64,000 nt of DNA from Lepidodermella squamata (lineage: Eukaryota; Animalia; Gastrotricha). This document shows, piece by piece, positions 3,129 to 38,319 of this stretch. Location: NCBI GenBank assembly GCA_047495785.1, contig JBLDXI010000013.1, positions 4,340,001-4,404,000 on the forward strand, in the 5' to 3' direction. The notes under the pieces are model-generated. The model did not search any database, was not told the DNA's origin, and worked only from the letters and a program-made list of their open reading frames with translations. The position numbers and the translations under genes are program-made. How positions within the stretch are numbered: the first letter of the stretch is position 1; each line of letters begins with the position of its first letter.

Positions 3129-5460
3129 CACTTGTATTTGCGGCAGTTTTTTGCCTCGCATAGGTAATCTCACCATGCTTCTTTTCTTGCACGCCACTCG
3201 CACTCATATCATAAGTTAGAGGCATGCCACGTGTTGAAGTCTGTCCGCTGGACAGATTAAACGCTAATTTTAGTATTTTCTCAAATTAAAAGATGCGACA
3301 CGCTTTGTGTCTTGTCCGTGCGTTCATTCAACATACCTGTACCTTGAAGAAGGGTATATTTTTCTAAAACGTGTTTTACGAGGTGACCGTTTTTCGAACG
3401 TTAAAAATCAGCCTTTGCTCCTAATTTTCTGAAATTTTCACCAAATGCGAGCAAGATGATTCTCAAATTTACTGCAAATTTTGAGAATTTTATCTGATTT
3501 TTGGCAAATTTAAATGTATTTCTAAGCTTGAATTAATTTGAAAAATTTGTAGTGATCAAAATGGGGGGTTCCAGATCAAAGTCAAGTGTCAAAATGATGG
3601 TCTTGACCCCGGCGAACAATTTAGCTTCAAAAAGTTGTTCGATTTCACCTTATATCCAGGTGTGAACAGCTTCAAAGGACGCTGACTTCTCAGTCGCCTA
3701 TCGACTACTTCTGGGAAAATTTGGTATAAAACAACTGGCCCTCTCTCAGTTTAGCGATGAATCAAAGTCCGACACTGGAACCAGCAATTGGAGCTGTATA
3801 GTATTACTCAATTAGAAAACTATTGACGGTTAAACATGCTGAACATCCGAGGAATAAATGATTTTCACAATTTATTTATAGCTTTATAGATTTCATGTAA
3901 TAAATTTTTCGAAGTGTTTCATTTTATAATAAAACTGATTTTACATGCAGTCAATATCCTCGCCTGATTAAAATGATTGTCATGCGCTAGCTGTTATTGC
4001 TCCGATGGCAATTTATGGCATTTACGATGACTGGATGGACGTCGAAAGCTTATCCATTTTCCAAGTCACGAGTTGAACTCAGACAAGAGCTTTCACAACT
4101 TTTGTTAGATTTTACACAGCCAGGACAAGTCATATTCGGTGGACCTGTAGGTATATAATATAACAAGTGAATATGTATGTTAATCGTATTGTTTAAAATA
4201 TTATCTTACGAATGAACAGACGTGGGCGACGTTCCAAATGTAACGATATCTGCCACAGGCTTGAAGGCTTCGCGAGATTGCCCGGCGGTAGCCATTGGTT
4301 ACAATCACTGCCCTATTATGATAAACGTGTAAAGCACCTTCAATAATGAGTGAAATACGCCGACCTACAAAATACAACACTGATTCTTGTCCGGTGAACA
4401 GATTAATTTAAAAATATAATTTTCACGTACTCATCAATAATTAATCGCTTCATATTTCACGCTGCATTTGCGTTAAAAGCATAGGCTCATCGCGACATAA
4501 TCTGTCCGGTGGACAGAACGCAATTTTTTCTGTTTTTTCACGCACAAACTGCTGCTAACATCAGACGAAGCCGGCATGCCGTATATCAAATTGAATAACG
4601 TGCTGGCAACCGTTTCATGACAATGCGTCATTTTCAGGTTGCCGCTGGTGCAAAATTTTGAAATCCCTCCATCGATTGAATTTCTCAAAGAAATTGAACT
4701 TTTATTATTTGTTTTTTTTTCCTCATTTTTTGAAGCGGATTTGTCAAGAAAATTGTAAAATAGTAACCCCATCGTACAATTACAGAACGGATTTTTGCAT
4801 AAAGGACCAGGACCTCCTATTTGAAGCAATCAATTATAGGATAATTAAATGAAATTGAATAAAATAAAAAATAATTCCAAGGTTGTAAGAAGTGTGTTGA
4901 ATTAAAAATTGCCGGCGGTTGAATTTATGAGCGGATCAATCCCTAAATTCCCAACAACTTTGAAACGCAGTATATTTCTGTGCATTCGAAACTGCGTGTA
5001 TTGAATGACAGGTATTATCCGGAAAATCGACGGAAAACGATATAGGTGAAAATGTCAAAAAAAACAGTCGGTCAAATTGTCACATTAAAATCCAAATTTG
5101 CGCCTGGTTTTAACACCGGATCGTCTTCGAAATGCTATAGACCCCAGGCAATAAAACTCTGTTTCGATGAAGAAGCCGCTTATCAAGTTTAATTAACCTT
5201 AACCTTGAAGTTAACCTTGAACCTTGAATTTACGTCTTCTTTCAATGTTACAATGTAAGTCGCATTTTTGATGTTTCAAATTCGTGTCACGCGACCGGAT
5301 CGTGCGACGAACGTGTGCGCAAAAGAAACCAACGTAAAAACGTCAAAACAATAATCACTTCAAATTCAAATTCACTCGCAATTGATAGCAGACATTTTTC
5401 AAACTTCATTATATCCAGCAAAATATCTCAATTTTTAACACCTATTTCTAATTTTTAAAG

Positions 5461-8400
5461 ATGTTGCGGTTAAATTTTCTGTTATTTATTGCAATCACCG
5501 CAAGTTTTTCCAACTTGATCAATGGCAACATTTTCGAAGATGACGAGGAGGACTTTTATGGCAATGTCATGCCATCAGATGGCTGTTGCTCCCCCGACTT
5601 CATCTTCGTAATCGACATCACAGATAAAATCGGCTTCAGTCCTTACGACTGCGAGGCGCATGTTCGAACTTTCCTAACCGAAATCGTGAAGAAAGCCTCG
5701 CCGAATCACTGCAGCCAAGTCCGCATCGCCATTGTCGAATACGGCACTCAGGCTCGGATTAAATACGATTTCCGGAAATACTCAACTCGTGAGGCAGTTC
5801 TATCAGCTGTTAAGAAATACACAACCGGCTCGAGTTTGGGCGGTTTCAGCAATGCTAAGGCTGGGTTTACCGGCGCACATTTGCTGCTCACCAAACCGGA
5901 ACGAGGTCGCAGATCAGCGAATTCCGCCTTCGTTTTCTGGCTCGTTCATTCGACGCCGTACGATGCTAAAGCCGTTCAGCATTACGTCGATGAATACGTC
6001 AAGCCGGATGCTCACGTTGTCGTAGTCGCTGTTGGTTCAGGGGTGGACTACTTCGCCGTCAGCCCGGTTTCGACTTCTTACCTGTACTTTTTCGAGGTTT
6101 CGCGCATTTTGAGTAGTCAATTTCGAAGAAATAATTCTTAGCTATTTTTTAAGGTGGAAGATATTGTCGATTTGGTGAAAAAATGTTCGGAATTCAGGAT
6201 TAATTACTGCCCGATCACTACAACTACCGCGTATTTTCTCCGAGTTTTTTTCGAATTTTTTCGCGATTTTAATATGTTTCAAGGCCAACTACGACCACAG
6301 CTAGGTCAACTTTTGCGCAGAATACATCTCCGACAACGACAAGGTTTGATACTTGAAAAATTATTGGAATTCTTTTTTGAGAAATGTGTTGGAAAGGACG
6401 ACGACTACGACTACCAGGCCAACTACAACAACCACCACAACGTATAAAAACAAAAAATTTCATTGAATCTCAGTAAATTTTTGGATATCTTATGTCATCA
6501 AACTAGGCGGCCAACAACTACGACCAGGTGAATTTATTTGCGATTTCTGATCATGCTGGTCATTTTTTGCAAATTAGAACTACGACGACGACTACACGGC
6601 CAACTACCACGTTCGTTTTCAAATTCGCCCGCCTGGCAGAAAAATTTGTCATTAAATGCGTTTGATCCAATGCGTTTGAATTTTCAGGACGACAACTCGG
6701 CCGACCACGACCAGTACTACAACGACTACGACAAGGTAAAATTTGAAAATTTCACTTTGTAAGCATCGCAATAGAGCTCAGAATTCGACGGTCGGAAAAT
6801 CGACATTTCACTCGAAAAATAGCTGGAAAATGGAAGTGGGAAATTTCCCAAATTTATTAGAAATTGATTTATTCTAAATTTTAATTGTAATGCCTATTTT
6901 CGTGAATTCTACCATCTACCATAAAAAAAATTGCTAAAATTGTTTTATTTTGTTTTAGGCCAACTACGACAACAACTACCAGGTATTTTTTGCCTTTACA
7001 CGGATATCTTGAAGCGGAACCGATTTGCAATTTGCAATTTTAAGGGCTACAACGACGACCTCCACTACAACTCGACCGACTACGACTACGACTCGTCCAA
7101 CTACCACTACAACGACTACTCGGCCAACTACCACCACGACTACGACCCGTCCTACGACAACAACGACGACAACTCGCCCCACCACCACTACGACGTCAAC
7201 CAGGTTGTCAAGCCAGACTTTATTATCGAGTAGTTTATGTTGAACCTGTTCAATTCTTATTTATATAGGCCTACTACTACTACGACGTCCACTACAACGA
7301 GGTTCGTGATAGAAAATTCCTATATTTGATTGATCAATCATTTTTGTTGATTTTCAGAACTACTCCCACCACGACTGCAAGGTCTTTACTCCATTTTTGA
7401 AATTTTCGGAAAAAACATAAAACATTTCCCCTGCAGCACCCCAACAACTACCACGACCCGAGCACCCACTACGTAAAATTGAGGCTGATAATTTTAAATT
7501 ATTTATTAATGAAATTCCCTGATTTACAGCAGGACAACTACCACGAGAACGACAAGGTAACTACTACATTTCAGAAAATGAATAAAATATAAAATTAAGG
7601 ACTGCCAATTTTATCTAACAGGACAACGACCCCTCGAACTACGTATAATCTTAGTCCCAAAAAGTTGAATAATTTCTTAATATCTTATGCAGGCGAACAA
7701 CCACACCGAGAACGACCAGGTAACATGGTTTTTTAGTCTTGGTTATTCTGGAATTTAATTATTTCTTTAAACGGACTACAACTACAAGAACAACTCGAAC
7801 TACAACGACTAGAACCAGGTTATATAATTTCGGAATCTTTCCTCGTCGATTTTTAATCTAATTATTAAAGGCGTACGACTTCGGCCCGGGACACAGGGTC
7901 TACGCTGCCGAACCCGCCCGTTCCGGCCACTGATTTTTGTTTCGGTTGCCGAAGCCGGCGAAACCACAAGGACCTGTACGCTGACCCTGACGAGTGCCAC
8001 CACTACTATCAGTGCTTCTACTTCAACGAGACCTATGCTATTGGCATTCGTCGCCAATGTCCGGAAGAAACATTTTGGCACGACGAGGCAAGAATTATTT
8101 ACCATAAAAAATTGTTTGAACAAAACAGATGTTTTTAAGAATTTTCAGAAAAATCCTTCTTTGACCTCTTTGATTTGACCCATTTTCTGACAGGTTCTAT
8201 CGTGCATGCCTGAGGGTGATGTACCCTGCGTCGATCGATGCCAATCAGACCCGACTGTCAAGAATTGCTACGCTGGCTCTGGCTGCCGGCAATTCTTCGT
8301 CTGCGCCAACACGGCTTCCTACGGCATGTGCTGCCCTGAAGGTACCCAATTCAACGAAACTTCATGCAGCTGTGAGTCATCGGAAACCTGCGAAGATGCT

Positions 8401-9728
8401 TGCACTCAGGTAAAATCGCGTAAACTCCCAAAGTGGAAGAATTTGCTTGCAATTTTTAAGATTTGTAGAATTAAGAAATAATTTTTTTTAAATGATCAAG
8501 TAACATTTCATTTTAAAATTGATTTATAATTGAAACAATTTCAAGTTTTTGAAATTTTAAAATTTTGATTTCGGATTGGCTCCGTAAAAGCAGGTTTGAT
8601 GCAGCAGAAACCCGCGAAGAAATACGGAATAATTGCGAGAACTTAGCTTGGGAACAATTTTTGCCATTTTTTAGAGTTTTTAATTACATGAAAATTTCAC
8701 TTAATTTAAAAAAAATTGAACTTTTCGAAATAGGCATGATTTTGAGCTTCGATTTATTTTCAGCAAGGTCCCCGGGTTGCCACCACGATTCTGCCAGCTG
8801 TTCAAATCAACTCAACGGTCTGCTTCGATTCTTATGGAACCCACATTTCGATCTCAACCAGCGAAGCTAACGCCTATTACCTCATCGATGAAGACGGCCA
8901 GGCCACCGAGAAGCAATACTGCCCTGACGGCGTCAATTTCGACCTCACAGCTTGCCGATGTGACATTTTCTTCGACGGCGCCGTTGCTCCAATCACCGTC
9001 GTCCGCCGCGCCATATTCTGGGCACCCTTTGACGCTGACACTTACGACCATTCCGTCCACAAATTCTCGACATTTTTATACGACGATATATCACGTGACT
9101 CGTCAGTCGCAGCTCACGGCGGTGGTTCTCTCAGGTGCAACTACGGCCATCTTTCTATCCCAGGCCTCAAGACCTTCGACATGCGTAGCCACGGTTCATG
9201 GTGTTCGTTTTTCCGATGTGAAGATGGCCCTGGGTACCAATGTGGTACCAGCGGCGGTATTTTGTCGAATAACAAGGACGATAGACAGTTTGAGTTCACC
9301 GTCATTCTTGCCAGTGTTGGGAATAACAATTTCACGGGATATTTACACTTCTATCAACCGACTGGGACTCAAGTTGTCACTTCGACCGTCACGGTTCCAT
9401 CAGATGGCTGGAACCATGTCTGCGTCACGTATGACGAAATGGCGATTCGTCTCTACCTTAACGGGGTAAAAAAGATGAATTATTTTAATTTTAATTTTAT
9501 TTATTTTTAATTTTTCAGGTGATCACTGATACTCAATATGTTGGCGGTTATTTGGCGATCGGTCATTGCCCGTACGTGATTGGCCATGATCAACGGTACG
9601 GCTACTTCAAGGGTCACATCGATGATGTCCTGATTACGCCGTTCGCTATGACCTTGGATGAAGTTGAAGCTCATCGACGCGGTGATCGCAACTTCCTGGT
9701 GCAACGCGGCTTTTGGATCGAAAAGTAG
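5461..9728 (+). CDS. Secreted VWA + Thr/Arg/Pro mucin linker + chitin-binding type-2 domains (2 + 1 degenerate) + laminin-G/ConA-like domain protein (Pif/BMSP-like), paralog A
   Basis: 20 exons: 5461-6096, 6154-6230, 6284-6343, 6397-6441, 6507-6527, 6578-6610, 6688-6735, 6959-6982, 7045-7203, 7269-7301, 7358-7381, 7437-7472, 7530-7556, 7622-7642, 7693-7719, 7789(or 7774)-7818, 7871-8087 (GC donor), 8194-8409, 8764-9465, 9519-9728. Signal peptide; VWA DFIFVID..RIAIVEYG; CBM14-like ADPDECHHYYQC..CPEETFW; LamG WNHVCVTYD..LYLNG..FKGHIDD. Collinear with paralog B. Confidence 0.88.
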
Positions 9729-10985
9729 AGCTTCTTCAGCTCAATCTTCGAACTTTCTACTATTGCATTAAAATGTGTCTATTTATCGATTTAGTTATAT
9801 TATCAAAGATCTACCTACTATTAAAGAGTTCGTTAATTTTGATTGCATAATTACTGTTTCAATAAAATTGAAGGTTTCATGTCTCCGTGAATTTTTCTGC
9901 CTGCAATTTTTTCATATGATCCTGATTGGATTCATATACTAGATCCCGGAATCCAAGTTCGGCATGAAAAACAGGAAGCCAAAAAATACACATTTTCCAT
10001 TTGCATTCTGCCGCGGCACAATTGCATTTTGCCGTTCTAATTTTAGGCATGAACTTGTACACGTGAATGATGGCTGTTATTTTTTGCGTCTTCTTCATCG
10101 TCGTATTCCACTTCTATGGCAATGATGGTAACGAATGAATTTTATTGCTCTTGGCACTGGGTAGAGGCAAACAATAAATAATCTACAATTCGCATTTGAA
10201 ATTATTATTTTACAAAGATGCAACAATGTCTTAACAAAAAATGACCTAACGATTTATTTCAGCTATTAAAGATTAGCGGCACAGATTACAACAAACCGCA
10301 TTGAGTAAATTTCTCATCAAGACAACGTGACATAGCTCTGTTCTCATGCAAAATACTAGAGTTGCGTTTTTTATGGTGTCCGCGGGCTAATTATGGCAAT
10401 TAAGACCAGATGACACACATAACTTAGCTTATGCTTTTCAAAGCAATCGTTCAACTTTAAATTCAGAAATATTGAACTACGGATTTTTTGACAAGTTTGG
10501 ATTCAAAATAATCGTCATTTGACAGTTAAAATTGAGAATTTTCGGTAAATTTCGAAAAATTTCAAAAAATCAATATTTCTCTCGATTTTCGCGGATCGTG
10601 CCGACGAAATAAAAAAGGCTTTCCCACGACGTTTGGCTAAAAACTGACGGTATGGCACGTCGTCATAAATTAACGAGGGTCAGATGGCGCTATGTCGTAA
10701 ATTAATTACAACCATGTCTCGATTTGTCAAGGCTTAATCTAATCAAGTCGGGGCGTGATTAGTCTTAGCTGTTTGTCTCTCGAGCTCGGATAGCTCCAGT
10801 CTAATTATTTGATTGTTAGTTCTGTGTTGCGGAGGTGTCCAAAATATTGATCACAGCGTTGAACAATAGCTTCTTGGACACCATAAAAAACGCAACTTAG
10901 GTAGTGAGAGAGAGAGAGATTGGCGTTAACTGTCTTCATGTGAAATGTCATGGTATGCTGTACAGCTCGGATATAAGAAATACTC

Positions 10986-11543
10986 TCACGATTGAAGAGA
11001 AATTACGATTTCACGAGCTTTGTAGTCCAAAACGACCTTACATTGTGCCTTTTCTAAAAACTCGCCTCCTAAGATATTCATATCAGCGAAATGCGAGTTC
11101 AAGGGCGATAAGTAAACCGGGGTTTTTCTGCCCTGAATTGTCAGCATCGTTTGTTCAGGGATATAGCCATCAGATCCCAACACTGCTTCGAGTGCTCGCT
11201 TGCACATATATGTAAATGGCGAGCCGCTATCGACAAAAAAGAAAACATTCTTCTTCACTTTCCTTTCAACAATCAGTGGTACTAAAGGTCGGCGATATGA
11301 GCCCCAAATCATTCCATTCACTTCTTGTTTTGGTTCTTGAAATGTTTCAGAGAGATACTGAATGCCGAACTCTTTCGCAATGTTAGTCTCCAAGTCGCTC
11401 TCATGCAAATCTGTGAGCAAGACATCAAAGTGATTAGGATCGATGAAGTCAATCGGCTCAATGGGAGCGCTACAAAATCACAGTTTTACCTATAGATTAA
11501 AATGCAATTCAAAAGTTTACCTAATAGAGCTTAGATTAGCCAT
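10986..11543 (-). CDS. Stand-alone retropepsin-like (clan AA) aspartic protease
   Basis: Exons 11543-11521 and 11469-10986 with a 51-nt GT-AG intron, ~168 aa. Motifs FFVDSGSPFTY and NILGGEFL. No flanking gag or RT seen. Confidence 0.78.
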
Positions 11544-13209: not shown

Positions 13210-13464
13210 TTAGAACACGTGCGTTGTTCTAATTAGCGAAGATTACACGCACGTTTTTTATTGCGCGTAATTGCTCATTCATAAAACAGCAACGCATTTT
13301 TACGCACAGCAATCATTTTATTTCTATTGCACACAAAATACGCTGTTAATAACCGAGACGATAGCCGAGGTTACCAAAGGCGAGCGCAGCGATGCCATCA
13401 AAATAAAGCGAGGCGAAGCCGAGTCTAGTCGTGGAAGGCGAGAGTAGCGAGCCTGGATGAGACG

Positions 13465-13548
13465 TTTCAATCCAATAGCCGCGTTGCACCAGGAAGTCGC
13501 GATCACCGCGTCGATGAGCTTCAACTTCATCCAAGGTCATGGCGAACG
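13465..13548 (-). pseudogene. Inverted fragment of the last coding exon of paralog A
   Basis: Reverse complement matches 9640-9723 at 80/84 nt (FAMTLDEVEAHRRGDRDFLVQRGYWIE). Confidence 0.92.
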
Positions 13549-13984: not shown

Positions 13985-16900
13985 ATGGTGAGATTTGTTC
14001 AATGGATCTTCGGCCTAGTTCTGGCCATTTCCGCCTCCGCCTGGGCCAACAAGCCGTGCTGCTCGCCTGATTTCGTCTTCATCATCGATATCACGGAAAA
14101 GGTCGGCTTCAGCCACCGAGCTGGCGAGACGCATGTTCGCAATTTCCTCGAAGAAATCGTCTTCAAAAACTCGCGACGCGACTGCGATGAAGTCCGAGCG
14201 GCTATCATCGAGTACGGCTCCCAGGCCCGCATTAAATTCGACTTTGCCAAGTACCCGACCAACAAGCAGATCCGCGAGCACATCGCCAGCTACAAGCCGG
14301 GCAAGAGCCTAGGCGGTACCTCGAACCCGAAGGGCGCTTTCACTGGTTTGAAGAAGCTGCTGGAAGACGCGACTCGCGGCCGTCGTGCCTCGAACCCGCT
14401 CACCGTTTTCTGGCTCGTCAAGTCGAACCCGGCTGATGTTGCCGCTCTCGAGTACGTCGTCGATGAGATCAAGGCTGCGAATCCTTCGATTCAGATCGTC
14501 GTCCTCGCGGTTGGCGATAATGTCGACACCAAGGACATCAAGTTCGTGGCGACGTCGTCCAAGATTTTCTACCATGTGAGTATTGATGTAATTGCGAGCT
14601 TTGTGAGCTTTCGGGTGCCGCTAGGGTACATCGAAGGCTAATCGTCACTTTTTTCGAACTAGTTCTGCCGAGTGCGCGAAAATAGAGCAGATCAAGGTCA
14701 GAGACCTATACCTTATTCTATACCTTAGTAGAGCAAGATTCGGTCATTTCATTTTCATCTCTTATCACGAATATAAGAAGGTATAGAAGGCCACGGGAAA
14801 TTACTCAGGCTATGTGGGTTAAGTCGATTTTCCAAAAATTGGTGAATATTCAGATAATTCAGCAAATATTCAGCAATATGTAGTCCCAAACTATAATTTT
14901 CGAGGGAAAATAATTACTAGGAAAAATAGTAAATAATCTGGATATTTCTCAGCTTGAAAACGTATTATTTAGAGTTTTTTGAGAAGATTCGTTTTTTGCT
15001 AATAAAAAAATTGAAAAATTAAGACATAGCAGAAAGTTGAATACAAGCTTTGAGGATACCAGCTAGCTTAATTATTGGACGCTATTTTTTAGCAGAATAC
15101 CAGAATACATTATAGCGGAACCATATTTGCATATTGCGGAACGTATTTTAGATAGGCAAAAGGTCGATTTTCGAATATTTCTACGAAATAAGGCAATGTA
15201 GGAATTCTATAGTGAAGAATGCGTCTTTTACGGAAGTTTACGCTGAATTAAAAGGTGATTCCTTTAAAATTACGCTTATCAATCACGGCATCCTTGAAAG
15301 TTTCGAAAAATGGTTTGAGGCCCATTGAAAATTCCAAAATTTGGTTCCGCTAGAAGTAAGACCCTTTTCCCTTTTTGTTGGAACTTGGAACGCAATAAGG
15401 CTCAAATTGTAGGCGTGAATAGTGAATAATATGAAAGAATTTTACTGTTAAAAAAACTAGCTCTACCCTGAATACTCACGGAAAGATTTTTCTTCGATTC
15501 TAATCTCTCTAATCTCTGATCTCTGATCTCTCTAATCGATTTTCCTCTTATCTGCGATCTTCTTCAGCCTAACTTTATGAATCCTTTTTTTCCTATCACA
15601 GATCGATAATGATCATGGTCTCGCGAAAGCTGGTGCTTCTGTCAAGATCGAATACTGCCACTCTAGCGGTAAGACTACAACCACCGTTCGCACCACGACA
15701 CAAGACCCGGCCACTTCTGATCGCGCCACGACCGCCAGGAACCCGGGTACAACCCCTCGTGCTACGACCCGTCGCGCTACAACGACCCCGACCCGTGCGA
15801 CTACCCGCCTGAACGACGCTACTACGGCGTCTTTCCCCGAGTCGATCCCAGCCGATGATTTCTGCTTCTCAAGCCGTGCTAGCCGCAACTCGAAGGACGT
15901 GTTCGCCGACCCGAACGAGTGCCACCACTACTACCAGTGCTTCTACATGAACGAGACGACAGCGTTCGGCATCCGCCGCGTGTGCCCGGTTGGCACCTTC
16001 TGGCGCGAGGCCATCCTCGCGTGCCTGCCCGAGCCCGACGCGGCCCGCCCGTGCTTCGACCCGTGCGTTGACGATGCGCTGCGCTGCTACCCAGGCAACC
16101 AGGGCTGCCGGTCGTTCTACAAGTGCTCCAACACTGCCTCGTACGGCATGTGCTGCCCGGAAGGTAAGATGAGTTCAGAATTCAGAATACATAACGCCTT
16201 AATGACAGCCCTGTGCCAAGAAAATTTCAAGCCATACCCTAAATTTAGGGCTCCAGCAGTATATTTTCACGAAATATGATTGTTCAATTTTGCGCCTTTC
16301 CAAAAATCATGCCAAACCCATTAATTCAACCTGCGTAGGCGATATCGATTCCAAGTATCGATTTTACAAATCAGTGATTTTTCCGATATCGGAAGTGGCG
16401 GAATCTAACATTGGAAATTTTTGTGCACAGCTGACGGTACCGGATAGCTAAAGTAAAAAAAACCAGGGTCATGGGCATAGCAATATTGATCGAGAAAAGA
16501 AAAACCGATATCGCAAAAATTAAAAATTTTTAGTGTTCGGGCTCCCAATTTTAGTGGTGCAAATATTTTGCCTCTTTTTACTACCATTTGATCTCAGAAT
16601 CAGCTTGCAGGTGCTATATCGATTTTACAAATCAGTGATTTTCCGAATTTCCGGCCTAGGCGTAGGCAATCAAGGAAAATTGACTCTGGGGCCCATCTAG
16701 GGTTACCAGGTAGCTAGAATAAAAAGGTCATAAGATCCATTATTATCGGAAAAAAAAATAAAATAAAAATCACAAAATACCTATAATTAGTTATCAATTA
16801 AGCGCTGGAACCTAAAATATAGTGTTACAGTTAGTAGTAGGACCGGAGTAAACCGTAACGGTTTTTCTGGATTCAAAATTCAAAAATATTCCCACGGTCG

Positions 16901-19128
16901 ATTATCGCTCCGAAACAGCCCTAATCATAACTCTAGCCAAACTAAGGTCGTTTGAATTTTTGCGCGACATTGGGTTAGGGTTAGGGTTATTTTGGCGCGA
17001 AAATCGACCGTGGGAATATTGAATCCAGAAAAACCGTTACGGTTCACTCCGGTCCTACTACTAAAATTATGTATTCCCAATTTCTTCTGATCGTTCCGCC
17101 TCGTCATTCCCACACCAGTGGAAAATAATATTTTTTTTTAAATTCCAGGTACCGTTTATAACGATGCTACTTGCGGCTGTGATGAATCGGCGACCTGCAC
17201 GGACAACTGCGTGCAACGCGGCCCGGCCGTTCCGACTACCGTGGCGCCGTCGACCAGCTACAACGCGACCGTGTGCCGCGACTCGTGGGGCACCTACATC
17301 TCATCGGTCGCCGGCCAGGCCAACGCCTTCCGCCTCATCGACGTCGAGGGCAACCCGACTGACCTGCAGTTCTGCCCGAACGGCGTTGATTTCGACCTCG
17401 CCTCGTGCTCGTGCTCGTCCTACAACGACAACGCCGTCGCGCCCGACGCCACCGTGTCGCGCCGCGCCCTCATCTGGCTGCCGTTCGATAACGATGATAA
17501 GGATTATTCCATCAACAAGTTCGCCACCTTCCGCTACGACGGAGCTGAGGTCGACACGACCGTCAGCGCGTTCGGTGGTGGTTCGCTCTTCGTCAACAAC
17601 GGCCACTTGTCGATTCCTGGCCTCAAGACCTACGACTTCCAAGCCGCTGGCAGCTGGTGCGCTCATTTCCGGTTTGTTCGCCTTTTTCAATGATTTTCTC
17701 AGGGAATAATTCATTTTAGATTTTGAATAGAACGCAAAATAGATGTGCCAATGTTGCTTCCGAATTATTCCGAAGGGTTTCACCGACTATAACTCTGGAT
17801 TTTCCCGAAATTCGAAATTCGAAATAAAGTTCAAAATAGATTCGGTTAAATATTCGCAATAATTGCTCAAATTTCGAAATTTTCATTTTTTCAGAAACAA
17901 AATTCCAATTTTATTTTGTACAGAATAAGAAAAATAGCGAAGATGTTGTTTCGATATTTTTTGATCGTTCAAGATTCAAAATTCAAGATACTACAACGGG
18001 TTCTAAATTTGGGCCATTTTAGCTTTGGTCCCAACTATCCTTATCATAAGTAGAGAAAATAAACGAAAAAAGGTTCAGAAACTGTAAAATGTCACATCTC
18101 ATGACCAGAAAATTTTTAGAAAAATTCAAAAAGTCACGAGAATAGTAATCAAGTATGTCACTTGTTAATGTGATTAAAAACCCCGGAGATATTTGGTCTA
18201 ACCGGGGTTAAATTCCGAAAATTACCGAACCAGTTACCATCGGGATTTTCCTGGTATTCTCGGGTTAATTTTTTTTAAATTCTTCGGTTATAGCGCGGAT
18301 GAAAGATCAAATATTCTCGCGGTAGGTTTGGAAAATTAGTTGAATTTCATACACAAAAATAAAAAATAAATAAAAATATATGTATAACTCTGGGACACTA
18401 TGTAGATTTTTTTCGATTATTTTTCAAAGCTCAAAGTGAGCTCAAAATTTCTCAACTTGTACATGCCGATCCAGAGGCTTCGGGCCAAGGGTTGGCATTT
18501 TTCCTAAATTTGCAAGCTTCATTAAACCTGCATTTTCGTGGAATAAATCGTTTAGAGTGTTTACTAAGGCTAACCTTCTCTTTTCTTTGCACAGATGCGA
18601 ATCCGGCAACGGTTTCAGCTGCTCGAGCAACGGTGGTATCATCTCGAACAACAAGGATTCTGCCTCGAGCGAATACACCGTCATCATCGGCACCTCATCT
18701 GCCAACGCTGTTTCGGGCCGTCTCCGCTTCTGGCACACCAACAGCGTCCAGACTGTTCAAGCTTCGATTGCTACCCCTAGCAACGGCTGGAACCACGTTT
18801 GCATCACTTACGATGGCAATACTGTCAATCTCTACCTCAACGGCGTAAGTAAACAAAATCATTTGTATATATATTTTAAATTCTTAATTTCTTTGAAAAT
18901 TGTTTAATAATTTTGTTTTCGCAGGTTGTTGCCGATAGCGAGAATGTAGCCGGCTACCTGTCGATCGCCCACAGCCCGTACGTCATCGGTAACGACCAGA
19001 ACTTGGGCTACTTCACCGGCCACATCGATGAAGTCATCTTCACGTCGTTCGCCATGACCGCGGCTGAAGTCAACTACGCCCGTCTCGGCAACTACGCTGA
19101 ACTTCGCAACCTTGGTTTCTGGAATTGA
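13985..19128 (+). CDS. Secreted VWA + Thr-rich linker + chitin-binding + laminin-G protein (Pif/BMSP-like), paralog B
   Basis: Exons 13985-14575, 15602-16163, 17149-17671, 18595-18844 and 18925-19128, all GT-AG and in frame. Shares CCSPDF, ADPNECHHYYQCFY, NTASYGMCCPEG, GHLSIPGLKT, GWNHVC and GHID with paralog A. Confidence 0.92.
16232..16650. repeat. Dispersed intronic repeat family, copy 1
   Basis: Core caagtatcgattttacaaatcagtgatttttccgatatc recurs at ~16350, ~16620, ~31568, ~61300 and, inverted, ~63215-63265. Confidence 0.8.
16832..17063. mobile_element. Palindromic MITE with central telomere-like TTAGGG repeats
   Basis: Arms tagtagtaggaccggagtaaaccgtaacggtttttctggattcaa / ttgaatccagaaaaaccgttacggttcactccggtcctactacta. 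The centre contains gggttagggttagggtt; ends are TA. Confidence 0.85.
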
Positions 19129-24270: not shown

Positions 24271-24879
24271 TCAACCACTTTTCGTTTTGCCGCCCTTGCC
24301 CTTGCCCTTGCCGCCTTTGGGACGATTCTTCGAGTGGCAGCACTCGTTGACAGTGTTGTGCTTCGAGCAGTCGATATTGATGTTGCAGTTGATCGACGGG
24401 ACATTGCCGCGGATGACAGCGCCATCGTCCGTCAGCTCGACACTGTATTTCGGATTGCGGCACTTGTAAGTGTTGCCGCGAACCAGGCAGCAAACTTGTT
24501 GCGAACAATCGCCGTGGCGCTTGCAGGCTCCGTTCGACGGCTTCGCACCACGAGATTCCCAGCCAGTAGCTTCAGCATCAGCCTCAGCAAGATCGCCTTC
24601 GCCATCGGCTTCCGCGTCCTCGAGAGTTGTGAAGAAAGACCCGTCGCCGCAGAGAGCGCCGCCGACGAACCCTGAGAAATCGTTGTCTTCGTCTGACAAC
24701 AGGTTGGTCAGGATTGGCTTGCCGACGTAGTTCCACAGCTTGCCCCAGATCGAGCGTTCAGTGCTTGAAAACGTTCCGCGTTCGTCGCCAGTGTCGCCGC
24801 GAGCATTTTCCTGGTCTTCTTCCTCCAACGCCGATGAGGTTACGATGCAAAGAGCAAGCAGCAAAATAGTAGCTTTCAT
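24271..24879 (-). CDS. Secreted single-exon precursor: acidic propieces, amphipathic peptide, two C-C-CC Cys modules, Lys/Gly tail (toxin/AMP-like)
   Basis: 202-aa ORF with signal peptide MKATILLLALCIVTSSA. TATA-like CAATAAAA at ~24960-24967 and AATAAA ~70 nt after the stop. Confidence 0.85.
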   Translation of the reverse strand: MKATILLLALCIVTSSALEEEDQENARGDTGDERGTFSSTERSIWGKLWNYVGKPILTNLLSDEDNDFSGFVGGALCGDGSFFTTLEDAEADGEGDLAEADAEATGWESRGAKPSNGACKRHGDCSQQVCCLVRGNTYKCRNPKYSVELTDDGAVIRGNVPSINCNINIDCSKHNTVNECCHSKNRPKGGKGKGKGGKTKSG

Positions 24880-30333: not shown

Positions 30334-33300
30334 TCAAGTCGGATTGCTGTTTGTTGAATTGCTTCGCAATTTCCAGAGTGGATCCAATCCACCCAATGGA
30401 TCATCTTTCGCCTCAGCCTCAACCTTTTCGGCAGAAACCAACCCAGCATCGATGTCGGACTGGCGTTTCAAAAACGCTGCCTTCGAAATTTTCTGCTTCG
30501 CTTTTTTCGACAACTCCCCCGAGTCATCCATCGAAAACAGATTCGGGTCAACTAAGACCGATGCGATAGGCGATGCTGATAAATTGATAGCCGGGGCTGG
30601 TTTCGCCTCATTTTTGTTCCCATTATTGCCGTTAGAATGTGAATTGGCCTCATTTCGGACAGTTTTCGGTTCATTCGTTATAGCAATCGGTTCTGATTTC
30701 GATTTATCGATTTTTTCCGATTTTTCAGCTTTCGACCCCTCCGAGCTACGCCTCGACTCGTCCTTCGCCTTATTCGACGGCGTGAACGTCAACCCAGACA
30801 GCAGATTCTCAATGTCCGAAATAGTCGCAGTCGCGGCTAAAACTTCAGCCGTAACCGAGTTCGATTTCGCTGAATTTGGTTGGTTGGCATTGTTAGCCGT
30901 TCGAATAATCGCCGGGACGTCGGTTATGTGCGACGTCTCCACTACGGCGTCGCCGATGACGTGGTGCAGCGCGGTGGAGAACACGTCGTAGAGGTGGCGA
31001 AGGTGCTGGCGTTCTTGCACGCAGCCGCGGCGTTGAGATCGCAAGCGACGGACGATGCAGAGCAGATCGAAGGGCGACAAACTCGAGGCTGGCATCGGCC
31101 AATCATTGCCTTTCCGAGATGCTTGTTCGATTTCCTAAGAAAATAAAAAATGAAAAATAAAGCAATCAAGTCTTACGGAGTAGAAATCGAAACTAATTTA
31201 CACATTTTATAACCAATCCAGATCAAGAATATAACGAATGGGTGTGCCAAGTACGCACCCCAAATTTAGCGCTAAATTTCCCTCAAATTTCCCTGATTTT
31301 TCGTGTCTTTTAGAGAATCGTTGCGTGGTCAGTATACGAGTTAGGTTAAATCTGCAAAAAACTGCAGACTTTGGAAGTGAACTTTATCGAAGGCTGAAGC
31401 TTGCGGGATGCCATTCTTTGGCCAGTAGGGTGTCTTCACCCTCGAACTGCATGGCTCCAAAAGGAAATCTTGTAAAAGCTCCTCATTTCCCATAAATTAA
31501 AAAACTGCGTCAGAAATTTCTTTGCAAATTTGGGGCACTTTACCATATACTTCAGAATCCAGATTGCAAGTATCGATTTTACAAATCAGTGATTTTTCCT
31601 ATATCAGCCGTTCGGGAAACCAACATCGATAATTTTTTACGTAGCTTAGGGCGCCAGGTAGCTAAAATAAACACTCCTAGTTTCAGGGAGGGCATTAGTA
31701 TCGATCAAACACTAGTATCGATCAAAACGCCGAAATCGCAAAGAATCAAAGATAAATTTAGGGCAAGGACGCTTTTGAAGATTCGACAGCGAATTTGTGC
31801 ATAAATAACTTTTCAGCATTTTCGAGAAAATAACTGCAAAATAATTTAACAATCGAAAATATTCCAAAATTTCTTTAAAAAGAAATATTCAAAAAGAAGA
31901 ATCAAGATTTTGGGTTTATTTTATTATAATTCATTTTAGGGCATATTTTAAAATAAAATTCAGTATTTTTACTTAGAATTAAATATTTAAATTTAGAAAA
32001 AATATGAAAGACCGGTCATACCGATAGCAAGCAGAAAGCGGCCAAAAACACGCCAGTCCAGCCCGAGCCATTCGAACAGTGAAGCAGCACACTGTGACCC
32101 TGTCGATTGCGCTGAAGCGCCCAGGCGTAACGCACCGCATGAACGAACTCAACGACCAAGCGCGAATTCGCCGCAGCCGGGTTCAATTTCAACCCGGGCC
32201 ACAGGCAGAATTGCAGATGCAAAATGACGCGAGTCGCTCGAGGCGGCGTCATACAAGTCACGCTAAGGACTCGTTCGCGCCAAAACAACTGCGAACTGCC
32301 GTCCTTCTGACTTGGATAGTCTTTGACAGTTTTCAGCTGAATTTCAAAATCACCACATCGCAACGGCGTCGATTGGTGTGATGGCCAAAATTGAACCAGG
32401 CTCAGCGTTGAAAATGCGTCCAAATCTAATAGGGTGACCAATGTTTCGCACTGTTCGTTCCAAATCATTCGCCAAAATTTGACCAAAGTATGGCTAGTCG
32501 GGCCCTGGGCTGCGATAAATCTCGGGCAATGAGCCGCGTCCAAGCCCTGAAATTCAACCCGACTAGCGTTGATATAATCGTCTTCCAGCTCGGCGTTCGA
32601 ACTGTTATTCGTAACTCGCGTTGGTGTTCCGATAAAACTTGGTTTCGCTTGGCTGATCAGTTTCACGCGGTTGAAATCATAGGGCAAGCAGTCGTTTGAT
32701 AGATTTTGGTTAACCGGGGCACATTTCGCCACTGAGCATGTCAAACGGGCGCATTCGCGTTCTTGGTGTTCGAGTAGGATTTTCAGGTCTTTGTCGAGTA
32801 GCGTGGGTGATTGGTCGAGGGCGGCGACTATCGAGTCGATTCGCATGGCCTCGGATCGCAAGTGCTGCATTAGCTTCTCATTAGAACGCACTTTGGTCCA
32901 TTTCCACTGAAAAAGCGATAAAAAATAATTAGCAAAATTTTCGTGGTTCCCCGTTCTTATTACACGCACTTAGGCCAGATTCAAACTTTCCAATATATTT
33001 TTGAAATTCGATTATTTAGAAGCAGAAAATCACCAACATTTTTATTTCCACTAGTTTCAATAAAATAACCGAAAAATTTCGAATTACAAATTAAAAAGAA
33101 TACTTAATCTCATGCGCAAATTTTGAAAATTATTATAAAATCTGAAATCAATAAATAACTGGAAATAAAATAGTAACTCTTATTAGGAAATTTTTTCAAG
33201 AATCAAATCGATTACAATATCTAGCTTTTACCTCGCTTTCGAATGACGGCGACGACTTGGACTCGCCATTGCTAGCGCTCGTTTGGCTCGGGGACGGCGC

Positions 33301-36300
33301 CGGGCTGTCTTTCGTCAAATCCTTATAGGGCTGAACCAAAGCCACATTTTTCACGCCATTAGTCGCAACGCCATTCGGCTGTTTTTGGACATCAACCACC
33401 GGGTTTGTGGGAGCCGATTGCTTCTCAGGTTCTTGCTGTTTTTGTTGTTTGACAACAGGCTCAGGGGCTGGGGCGACTAGCTCCTCAGCAACAGGTGGTT
33501 TTGGCTGGTTCGATAACGCGAGAAGTGGCGGAGGCCCGGCGTCTGATGAAATCGGCTCATCCAACAGGTCAAAAGCCGGTTTTGAAGCTGGTTTGACCAC
33601 AGGCTGAGGGGCGAACTGGCCAGCCTGATTGGTGGTATAGCCCATCTGATTTTGACCCTGATTCGGCTGCAATTGCATTCCCGTTGGCAAAATCTGCGGA
33701 TTTTGAGCAGCGATTTGCCCTGGATTGTTGGAATTTGACCAATTATTTGTCGCATAAGATGGCTGGTTTTGAATTGGATTAGGTTTCGCTGGACCTTGAG
33801 GCTGATTTTGGACTGGCAAGTTGGCGAAGTTGTTCGGATTCGGCGCAGTTGTAATCCCGGTCGGAAATTGCTGAGAAACCGGCCCCGAAACCGGTACTGA
33901 ACTAAGCTGTTGAGAATTTACCGAGTGAGCCTGGGTTTGAGGCTGAAATTGGGCTGGATTTGATCCCTGCGGCTGATTTTGGCTCTGTTGATAATTCTGC
34001 CCCGTTTGACTGGTCAAAATTGGCAAGTGCTGATTTGATTGATTCATTAAACCCGGCCCAGTTTGAATACCAGGAGCCATCGATGAGACCGGGTATTGCC
34101 CTGAAGTTGTCACTGGGTTCATTTGCTGGGGATATCCCGACTGAATCTGGTTCTGGGGCTGAAACTGGGCTGAATTCGACCCTTGCGGCTGATTTTGACC
34201 TGGAATAGGGCCCTGCTGGTATGTCACCCCAGTTTGATGTGAAATACCCGGAAATTGGATATTCGATTGGGTAATCAAGCCCGGCACACCCTGACCGCCG
34301 GCTGCCATCGATGAGTTAGGATATTGTTGAGAATTTCCTGTTTGGAGCTGGTTTTGAGACTGATTTGTCGGTAACTGAGTCAAATTAGGTCCTTGAGGTG
34401 CGCCCTGTTGTTGATATACCGGATATCCTTGTTGAACGGGATTTGATATACCACCAAATCCTGAATTTTGGGCTTGAACAGGCTGGCCCGGAGTGGATGG
34501 CCTTGGCATGTTCTGCTGGACAGGCAACGGGCTTGGGCTCTGTCGATAGGCCAAATTTCCAGGTTGATTAGTCATAGGTTGAAAGTTTTGAGGAGCCATC
34601 GCTTGAGTTGGAACAGGCTGTTGGTTCAAATACGACTGGCTTTGGGCTTGATAATTTGTCGTATTATAGCCTTGATTGGCAAACTGGTTTTGGGCCTGAT
34701 TTTGAATATTTGAACCACCCTGGACTTGGCCGAAATTCTGCTGATTTGCGGGTGGAACTGGGCTAGGATTCATTCTAGTTTGATTTTGAAGGTTTATACC
34801 ACCAAATTGTTGGTTTCCAGCTTGCTGGTACTGAATGCCGCCTTGAAGCTGAGAAAATGACTGGTTGGCCGGCGGAACCGAGCTATGATTCATTTGAGCT
34901 TGGTTTTGAACGGTTTGACCTGCAAATTGAGAATTTCCAACTTGCGGATTCTGGAATGCACTGATTTGACCCTGAGGACCTTGTTGCGAATGATTCGGTA
35001 CAAATTGTTGTTCTGCAAACTGTCGGTTTTGCCCAAACTGTCCCATTTGGCTCGATTGACTTGTCGGCGGTGGATTGGCTACGTTTGGCTGATATTGCTG
35101 CGGATTTGGACCAGGCATTGCAAACTGGTTTTGAGCCGAAGGTTGCGAAGTTTGGACAGGTGCCGGTTGACCTCGGTAGCCAGGGTTTTGAGCCTGGTAT
35201 TGACCCTGTTGGTTGGGTTGCCCACCAAAATTGCCAGGGTTCTGCTGACCAGGTTGGTTAAACTGGTTTTGGGTATGACCTTGACCCTGATTACCCATTT
35301 GACCAGGATATTGCTGGAAATTTTGAGCAGGGACCTGAGTCGGAATTTGACCTTGATATTGCTGATTTTGGGTATTCTGAGGGACTGCTTGTTGCGGATA
35401 TTGGTTTTGCCCAACGTTACCAGCCGAACCCGATTGATTCGATACAAATCGATTGAGTTGATCGGGCATAACCTGATTTTGCACACCCTGGTACGCCGCG
35501 GCCGGTGCAACATAAGCATTCGTATCATTAGCCGGCATTTGTTGGGTAGCTCCAGGACCCTGGGCACCCGGTTGGTACTGATGATTCGGGTACTGATGAG
35601 CCCCGGGCTGATTCATGCCCGGAATCGAACTTTGACCCGGTGTCATTTGGGCAGCCTGATAGTAAGGATTCGGGACACCCGGCGCCACATGGGTCCTACT
35701 GACCTGAGGCACTGCCTGGTAACCCTGGGGCGAGTTGATTTGACCCCCTGTAGCCACAAAACTAGCCGGCACTTGGGTCTGCCTCATCGCCCGCCTCTCA
35801 GCTCTAGCGCCACTATTGCCAAACGACTTGGGCTTAAGAAACGGCAGCAAATCTTTCAAAGTCACCCCTTCAGTCGCACTGAAATCACCCAGCTCACCCA
35901 TAGCCCCGATTTCGTCGTCATCAACTTTGATCGGCTCAGTTTTCCGACGATTCACCCGCTCCAACTGCTCGTCTTTCGCCTTTTTCAGCCTATCCAGTTC
36001 TTCCCTAGCCGCTGCTTGCGCCTTTCTAACATCAGCGAGTAGATTTTCGGCTAAATCGTTCAATTTCTTGTAGAAACCAACACCCTTGTTGGCTTTGGTC
36101 ATCAATTCTTCAGTTGTCTGGCGCGAATCCAGCAAAACTTTGATTTGCGACTGTCGCCTTTCGGTCATCATCTGAATCGACGTCCTCAACTCGGCAAAAT
36201 TCGCATTCGCATCAGTTAGCGCTGATAGAATATTAGGCTGAGCCGCTAAATTTTGATGAATTAGATCGACGGTTGGGTCGAATTTCGCAAGTTCTTTCTT

Positions 36301-38319
36301 GAAAAGCTCCTGCAATTTCACGGGTTCGGATGACAGCGCGACCACTTTGCTCGTGATATCATCATTCGCCATCATTTGGCGCAGCTGAGCCTCGAGATTG
36401 ACACGTTGTTGCCGCATTTCTTCAACTTTGCCAACTACGTATCGCACTCGATCGACGATTGTTCGGTCGCAGGCATCTAAAGCAAAGAAAGCACACAAAT
36501 ATCAACCAAAAATACATTTGAATCAAAATTTTGATTAGACCATTTCTTTGCGTATTGTTCAAGAGATTCTCATCTGGAATAATTTGAAAAATTCACTCAC
36601 CAACTGCTGCTTGGACACTGGGCAATGCACGCCTGACGTCGTCAATCGGCTTAGACATCAACTCGAAATAATCCCTCTGCAGTGCCATGGCTCGGTGCAG
36701 CTCAGTATTCGAAACAGTGGCCATTTCATGCGCAGTTTTCAGTCTGGAAAGCGGCTCGTTAACGGACGCAGCTTGGGCAACAACCGCCTCCGAAACGCCT
36801 TCAGCCTTGGTAACCTCGTCAATAATCGCCGCAATATCATCGATTTTGTCCATAAAATCATTCGACATGCTTGACAACTGCTTCATGAGCCCGATTAATT
36901 TCGCCGAAATTGTTTTATCAACACTGAGAGAGGCGCATAGTTCTATAAGTTCGGGTGGCAAATTGTCCAAATTTGTCGAGTCGAAAACTTGGAGATCAGG
37001 AGTGACGGCAGCTAGAAAATCGTCCAATTCCTTCGTTTTAACCTCAATTTGCGCTGTAATTTCACGCAAAATCTTCGCTTTGTCTTCACTGTAGACTGAG
37101 GCTGACGTTGTCACCGTAAGAGGGACAAGAGTAGAAAAAAGGTCAGGACCGGAAAGTTCCGGGTCGGTTAGATCGAAATTGATAGCTTTAACGAGACAAG
37201 CGCCTTTAACAGGCTCCAGGCTGTCGTAATTGGGCATGCGTTCATGGTAAATGTGCTCGTTGTCACGATTCGCGCCGTTGAATAGACCTTGAGCGACGTC
37301 GAGAGTGAAGGATAACGCATCTTTATAACCCCAATCCCGCTGAAAAAGACCATAGCTCGTGAAATTTTAACAATATTCTTTTCGATACTTACGTCCATAA
37401 TTTTGTGGCATTTCTCTAAACGCTGAACTGCAGCTTGGAAAACAGAAACAGCTTCGCCGTAACGCTGCGAGTCGTTAGACGATCGTCCACGCTCAATTAT
37501 GGCGATTGCCTCGTAATAAATTTGCAAAAACTGTAGGCGAGACGGTCGTAAAACCGGATTCACGCTGCTGCTGTAAAGCTTAGATCCATTGTATTGACTC
37601 ATCAGGCGATCACATTGCGCGTAATATTCCGAGATTTGAACTGCGATTTTAGCAACAGCAACCGAATTTCGGTGGTCGAGGAATGATTTTTCCAAAATAC
37701 ATTGTTGAGCTTGGGCAAGCATCAGCAATTGCAAGATTTGAAGGGCGTCATATGAAATCGGCGAGTTAGCAGCGCCGACAGTTTCGCTGATTGCCTGGAA
37801 ACACCAAGCCGCACATAAGTAATGCGTACAGGCAATTTTTAGACTGTCAGCTGTAGTTCGCTCCTCTTGAGCACCTAATGACGAGTACAACGCGCCGGTG
37901 TTGTAGAATACAACAGCCATTTCAAACTCAATTTCCGATGAGTTATATTTCTGTTTGGAGACAGGATTAGTCCACGTAAATTCAAGAGGAAAAGTTTCGT
38001 CAGGGCTTATGTTTTCTTGCTTGAAGCGCCCACGAAGAAAGTTCAGTTGGCATAGGTATTGTTTAAGTAACCCCGGCGAATTGATAGTCGTGACGGCATT
38101 TCGGCGCATCTCGTTCAGAGCTGTAACAGATCGAGCGAACTGCGAGAAATCCATTTCGTAGTAACGGGTAACCAACTATAAAATGTTTTATCGTCATTTC
38201 TTGCTCTGCTTCTTCACCGAAAACGGAAAACTTACCACTTCTAGAGCCTCCGAGAAGTCACACGGCTCGGATGCGTACGGAGTAATGACTGCCAACGGAA
38301 TTCTAGGGCAGCCTTCCAT
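30334..38319 (-). CDS. PTPN23: HD-PTP / tyrosine-protein phosphatase non-receptor type 23 (Bro1, V domain, low-complexity region, PTP-like domain)
   Basis: Exons 38319-38236, 38175-37393, 37339-36601, 36476-33232, 32906-32022 and 31134-30334 join in frame. N-terminus MEGCPRIP; Bro1 MLAQAQQCILEKS and DNEHIYHE; PTP LPYDFNRV, DYINAS, IAAQGP and HCSNGSGWTG. Confidence 0.93.
31540..31800. repeat. Dispersed intronic repeat family, copy in PTPN23 intron
   Basis: Extended similarity to 61290-61500 and to the reverse complement of 63110-63265. Confidence 0.8.

Follow-up and report, generated by a model that had tools for sequence, protein, structure and literature searches.

The molluscan matrix protein PifN carries a poly-threonine insert between its VWA and chitin-binding domains, together with a complete LamG domain (Shimizu et al. 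2024, PMC11291548). The word 'intron' is absent from the main text of PMC11291548, and in the literature that we searched, an incomplete set, we found no micro-exon linkers in Pif/BMSP-type genes. In the schistosome MEGs, whose definitions we take from PMC4671649 and PMC4015677, small symmetric exons follow one another in runs. MEG products are secreted, and the exon runs encode a Thr-rich disordered region (PMC4671649); they are small proteins with coding sequences made up mostly of micro-exons (up to 75%), and skipping variants have been shown (PMC4015677). In CD45, splicing of exons 4-6 tunes an O-glycosylated spacer (PMC4379584). Tandem duplication is often the source of symmetric exons in disordered regions, and copying a repeat unit together with its intron gives symmetry by construction (Schad et al. 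2013, PMC3632108). Newly gained introns have been described at protosplice sites (10.1101/051292; PMC4202315), and new introns are reported to have stronger protosplice character (10.1101/051292).

Here we describe gene A, which lies in the window, the whole stretch of 64,000 nucleotides that we analysed. Pfam and database searches were run exon by exon, and joined models were used for alignment and trees. The encoded domain order is signal peptide-VWA-Thr/Arg/Pro linker-CBM14 × 2-Cys-rich module-LamG3. Gene A has several features of the Pif/BMSP family (a signal peptide and VWA, CBM14 after the VWA, and a C-terminal laminin G domain), and one of PifN (a long poly-Thr insert between the VWA and chitin-binding domains, with a complete LamG). 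It resembles PifN in having a single VWA domain, and differs in its host, probably a non-mineralising microscopic spiralian, and in lacking an acidic Pif80-type insert (D+E content is 9%). Judged on its predicted domains, gene A may be called Pif-like by architecture only, and we set it beside molluscan Pif/BMSP by domain order alone. Searches with gene A exons returned no molluscan sequences, and the PifN-style insert is probably convergent. A sequence-only reading of this DNA had proposed a Pif/BMSP-like architecture with a mucin-like spacer, which the Pfam domains and the Thr-rich composition support. It had also found the architecture unfamiliar from Pif/BMSP-type genes; this applies to the micro-exon coding, for which we found no precedent, but not to the poly-Thr insert, already present in PifN.

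The MIDAS motif of the VWA domain is degenerate (D-I-T-D-K). Hydrophobicity is greatest at the N-terminus and a strong transmembrane span is absent; the product would be secreted. The linker of about 220 residues is 65% Thr, the rest including Arg and Pro. From this composition it is predicted to be O-glycosylated and extended, and it is probably disordered. Mucin stalks extend roughly 0.25 nm per residue, which would make the spacer some 50 nm long. The CBM14 domains are predicted to bind chitin, and a putative role of the protein is to cross-link cuticle or a secreted matrix.

Most of the linker is split among 14 exons, every one a multiple of 3 in length and together 588 nt, or 196 residues (Table 1). 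All 15 array introns are GT-AG and phase 2. They are 50-77 nt long, apart from one of 223 nt, with a GC content of 23-39%. The animal genome around them is compact, and its introns are short and rich in AT. About 0.6 kb of coding sequence is cut by 15 introns, an unusually high local density; the neighbourhood is otherwise poor in introns. Exons end in AG at ten of these introns, in AC at four and in GC at one, and the junction codon is always Thr, Arg, Ser or Ala, whatever exons are joined. The 2^14 exon combinations give 183 distinct lengths, all in frame and stop-free. The sequence-only reading had listed these exon lengths, the 15 phase-2 introns and the freedom to skip any exon, with the linker varying by up to ~196 residues; we recovered every exon and intron, and the computation came out as claimed.

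Two details needed revision. The array had been described as 14 micro-exons, a term that suits the ten that are 36 nt or shorter; the remaining exons are larger. Its last exon had been given as 30 (or 45) nt: the 30-nt form stands, and we rejected the 45-nt form because it requires a non-AG acceptor and does not match the RNA. An exon-like stub of Thr codons (7774-7788) lies behind this non-AG 'acceptor', where the intron that follows exon 15 ends, and its last 9 nt are the same as those that close the presumed exon 15 allele in the RNA. The stub may be what remains of a longer exon 16 whose 5' part has decayed, or else a direct repeat such as staggered-break intron gain leaves behind. At array exon 13, a tandem CAG-CAG acceptor permits a 24-nt form. 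We also considered whether the array is a single exon with frameshifts, an artefact, and rejected this: retained introns give in-frame stops in 13 of 15 cases and shift the frame in 2 of 15, and the RNA removes introns. Most, not all, of the junctions also came out of a de novo Viterbi gene model, which is not counted as evidence.

Table 1. Coordinates of gene A, its exons and paralog B in the window.
Feature	Position	Strand	Remarks
Gene A	5461..9728	+	20 exons, 881 aa, open spliced frame; Pfam by exon; RNA joints
Exon 1	5461..6096	+	Signal peptide and VWA; PF00092 E 4.9e-13; joint 6096/6154 in RNA
Exon 2	6154..6230	+	VWA end, linker start; phase 0 to 2
Array exon 3	6284..6343	+	60 nt; both junctions in RNA; unused internal donor at 6305
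Array exon 4	6397..6441	+	45 nt; 5' junction in RNA, coverage ends before 3' end
Array exon 5	6507..6527	+	21 nt; from sequence, outside placed RNA
Array exon 6	6578..6610	+	33 nt; 3' junction in RNA
Array exon 7	6688..6735	+	48 nt; both junctions in RNA
Array exon 8	6959..6982	+	24 nt; both junctions in RNA
Array exon 9	7045..7203	+	159 nt; internal ~27-nt repeat; internal Arg codons all CGN
Array exon 10	7269..7301	+	33 nt; both junctions in RNA
Array exon 11	7358..7381	+	24 nt; both junctions in RNA
Array exon 12	7437..7472	+	36 nt; 5' junction in RNA
Array exon 13	7530..7556	+	27 nt; binned RNA depth compatible with coverage
Array exon 14	7622..7642	+	21 nt; RNA contig departs from genome at 7643
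Array exon 15	7693..7719	+	27 nt; RNA letters differ, peptide identical
Array exon 16	7789..7818	+	30 nt; 3' junction in RNA
Exon 17	7871..8087	+	Linker end, first CBM14; PF01607 E 1.7e-5 (above cut-off)
Exon 18	8194..8409	+	Second CBM14-like domain; PF01607 E 0.004, below curated cut-off
Exon 19	8764..9465	+	Cys-rich module and LamG3; PF13385 E 4.2e-9
Exon 20	9519..9728	+	LamG3 end, stop
Paralog B	13985..19128	+	5 exons, 709 aa, same domains as gene A

Skipping of the array exons could be used and regulated, generating a ladder of spacer lengths as do CD45 exons 4-6 or the MEGs. The in-frame, stop-free exon combinations favour this explanation, as do the precedents themselves (PMC4379584 for CD45, PMC4015677 for MEGs). 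RNA bears on it directly. Two public runs cover the locus; judged by their placement on 5380-9900, X1 has the character of RNA and X2 that of DNA. In the X1 contigs, introns are spliced out where the model puts them after exons 1, 2, 3, 6, 7, 8, 9, 10 and 11, and further after exons 16, 17, 18 and 19. The RNA confirmation is exact for 9 of the 15 array introns; transcripts thus do use these junctions, as the sequence-only reading had supposed. One contig of 335 nt consists of part of exon 1, exons 2 and 3 and part of exon 4, with exact length bookkeeping. Another, of 339 nt, consists of the six consecutive exons 6-11 plus 15 unplaced letters; these end in AG and would fit exon 5 better than exon 4. 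Past exon 14, the RNA shows 17 letters that are absent from the window and then matches from 7780; translated, it gives the peptide of window exons 15-16, and the 17-letter segment is most simply an exon 15 allele with synonymous changes.

Among the joints listed for X1, which are all but five, none skips an array exon; these joints come from a single run assembled as contigs, which lose minor isoforms, and breaks within the array could hide branches. For most junctions, and in this one RNA run, the dominant mRNA includes the array exons in order. The uninterrupted run of six exons and the lack of a skip among the joints listed count against regulated skipping.

The symmetry of the array is also explicable without selection. 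Naively, 14 matching phases have a chance of P 2e-7. In a Thr/Arg/Pro sequence, however, AG is nearly confined to AGR/AGY codons and AC to Thr codons: of the dinucleotides in the spliced linker, 17 of the 20 AG and 142 of the 146 AC occupy codon positions 1-2, and the uniform phase 2 is therefore largely forced. Conditional on the observed exon-end dinucleotides, the probability of an all-phase-2 array is about 0.06, still on the low side. Introns occupy 10 of the 20 AG sites of the linker (Fisher P 2e-13), a placement that is the ordinary exon-end or protosplice preference. Since codon composition or unit duplication yields symmetry, it is weak evidence for selection on skipping.

The donor sites tell a similar story. 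Our background is a small set of 19 hand-read introns from genes A and B and three neighbouring genes. At +3 to +6 the array donors have 1.67 of 4 consensus matches, against 2.5 and 3.2 in the background (P 0.001), and these weak intronic halves speak for regulated skipping. At -3 to -1 they have 2.4 of 3, against 1.9 and 1.5 (P 0.02). The exon side compensates the weak intronic halves, and total donor match does not differ between array and background (P 0.25), which speaks against it. The sequence-only description of the donors as weak is thus right for the intronic half only. The protosplice-heavy character of the array donors suggests younger introns.

Relatives of gene A provide a further comparison. 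The exon 19 search identified a family of CBM14-LamG and VWA-CBM14-LamG proteins, including four homologues from one metagenome sample, on contigs with animal-type genes. The best match to gene A is L002 (52% for the VWA, 57% for the C-terminal part). In the tree, L002 groups with A (89/94; 84/91, not starred) and B with L007 (90/96). L002 and gene A have their first and last intron positions in common, and a phase-2 LamG intron that is present in B, L005 and L007 is absent from both. By these sequence comparisons, L002 is a probable ortholog of gene A. Its linker is at least 182 residues long and 73% Thr, and no intron interrupts the 547 nt that precede a scaffold gap at its 3' end; seven AGR codons lie within it. 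The linkers of B, L005 and L007 are also without introns and are 29-77 residues long; that of B, about 65 residues, lies within exon 2 (15602-16163), confirming the single-exon linker claimed for this paralog. Linker introns were found in no paralog or homolog examined. The comparison of probable orthologs indicates that the long Thr spacer is conserved but the micro-exon layout is not.

Some further observations on the family are worth recording. The GC-AG intron of gene A after exon 17 (8088-8193, 106 nt) is RNA-supported and is absent from B and L002. In L007, the probable B ortholog, the linker (2670-2880) consists of repeated K-P-W-x-S-T-T units and is not plain poly-Thr. A distant, intron-poor VWA-CBM14-LamG gene (L008, 1135-4403) adjoins a bestrophin gene. 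Searches for further VWA orthologs found none, a blank result that is uninformative on longer kin. RNA depth of 600-1000 over 7947-8400 (the CBM14 exons) comes from paralogous contigs, so other, more abundant family members exist.

How does gene A compare with genes in which such arrays are spliced alternatively? We took the Thr/Ser/Pro-rich MEG-4, -8, -14 and -32 as the MEG comparison set, with SmVAL6 as the domain-bearing case. Like these, gene A has symmetric array exons (14 of 14) and a signal peptide in a long 5' exon. Unlike them, it has only 10% of its 2.6-kb coding sequence in exons of 36 nt or less, and it encodes 881 residues with folded domains. The MEG analogy drawn by the sequence-only reading fails on this share of the coding sequence and on protein size; as to skipping, the X1 joints listed include none. 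Gene A is not a MEG, and homology to MEGs is not expected. In CD45 the regulated exons number three and are large, and the protein is a membrane receptor; regulation is proven in CD45, not in gene A. Since the splice-tuned O-glycosylated stalk of CD45 is known, splice tuning in gene A would be a variation on an established principle. The absence of the array from L002 also weighs against regulated skipping, which we now regard as unlikely. The proposal that the array works as a molecular ruler, tuning spacer length by splicing, is not supported by these data: the RNA shows consecutive inclusion, and L002 has a long linker without micro-exons.

Where, then, did the introns come from? The array resembles tandem-duplicated symmetric-exon proteins and new introns in having symmetric exons in a disordered region and AG/G-rich exon ends; it differs in its very high local intron density and in having no surviving duplication signature. 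The lack of obvious mutual similarity among the array introns, noted from the sequence alone, was upheld, with none beyond chance. A recent origin of the exon-intron units by tandem duplication found no support: among 105 intron pairs, 8 reached p<0.05, and lag-2 periodicity was absent. A two-exon cassette, prompted by the alternating AC/AG ends, failed a permutation test. Among the array exons there is no excess of shared synonymous Thr codons, and at the array intron borders there are no direct repeats longer than 2-3 nt (the signature of staggered breaks), save for a partial match after exon 15. Without mutual intron similarity or a synonymous-codon excess, the route of intron origin cannot be read from the sequence.

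Of the exonic substitutions listed between the sequenced haplotypes, 13 of 16 are synonymous, and frame-breaking indels are intronic, except for a compensated -1/+1 pair at 7174-7177 on a contig that is probably mislaid. Together these indicate purifying selection on gene A as modelled. A single clear exonic indel is seen, in both runs: an in-frame +6 nt in exon 9, behind 7076, so spacer length varies at the DNA level. The X2 DNA contains two strongly diverged haplotypes, at 7232-7776 and across gene A; in one arm, a stretch of about 250 nt shows 29 differences and 7 gaps, and the depths are about 29 versus 38-50. The X1 RNA is a mixture of shared and private gene A alleles. The pattern reflects high heterozygosity, pooling or polyploidy.

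An old, ancestral and possibly functional array, erased in the L002 relative by cDNA-mediated loss of internal introns, would fit the retention by L002 of only the first and last of gene A's introns. The paralogs in the L002 sample are without the introns common to A and B, and on this comparison other family members in L002's animal appear to have undergone intron loss; gain here versus loss in the L002 lineage is therefore not fixed. The mutual dissimilarity of the array introns is compatible with age, but needs no great age, because intron sequence already differs markedly between haplotypes. We nevertheless think an ancestral array improbable, given that the other family members examined have no linker introns and that the protosplice-heavy donors suggest younger ones.

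Our preferred explanation, which we consider reasonably probable, is that the array encodes a mostly constitutive mucin-like spacer in which introns accumulated, or units were duplicated, in this lineage as a by-product. The spacer would hold the VWA protein-interaction domain apart from the chitin-binding and LamG domains. Introns would have accumulated in the repetitive linker at AG/G and AC/G sites, and/or been copied along with an R-P-T(n) repeat unit; the two routes are indistinguishable, and either would yield phase-2 symmetric exons almost automatically in Thr/Arg sequence. Because occasional skipping would be harmless, there would be little selection against such introns. Spacer length would also differ between alleles through codon slippage, as in the +6 nt allele observed. 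The array would then be a lineage-specific feature of gene structure, and minor or stage-specific skipping may occur alongside constitutive splicing.

That selection instead keeps the introns because they interrupt a long (ACN)n codon repeat, so that slippage or unequal crossing-over is curbed and spacer length is fixed, is improbable too: the sole exonic haplotype indel does sit in the one long uninterrupted repeat exon, and the linker of L002, which has no introns, is so repetitive that its assembly breaks, but a single indel is anecdotal, L002 retains its long linker without introns, and the ~900-aa low-complexity region of a neighbouring PTPN23-like gene has none either.

The neighbourhood holds other features of note. 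This last gene (30334-38319 (-)), which we take to be PTPN23/HD-PTP-like from its domain layout, encodes its Gln/Pro-rich region in one exon and has a phosphatase loop without the catalytic Arg. An 87-bp inverted copy, 94% identical, of the 3' end of the last exon of gene A (9640-9726) lies just upstream of gene B (13462-13548 (-)) and is possibly a duplication scar. A 144-aa open reading frame (10986-11420 (-)) has a D-S-G-S-P motif like that of retroviral-type aspartic proteases and no Pfam hit. A single-exon secreted open reading frame of 202 aa (24271-24879 (-)) has acidic, Cys-rich and Lys/Gly-rich segments.

With gene A, a PifN-shaped matrix protein is on record from a spiralian that is probably non-mineralising, and the gene requires micro-exon-aware annotation. 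A bolder idea, which we hold to be doubtful, is that the Thr-rich spacers of several secreted matrix proteins here have been repeatedly micro-exonised, with stage- or cell-specific skipping setting spacer length. If true, micro-exonised spacers would be a MEG-like system in a free-living flatworm relative, inside multidomain proteins. Were skipping to be shown in gene A itself, the variation of schistosome MEGs would have its counterpart in a free-living animal, and the array would offer a molecular ruler within a protein of the cuticle or matrix. If our preferred reading of a mostly constitutive spacer holds, codon composition and intron turnover can make a symmetric array that looks like that of a MEG without selection for alternative splicing, and gene A would caution against deducing splicing function from exon symmetry.
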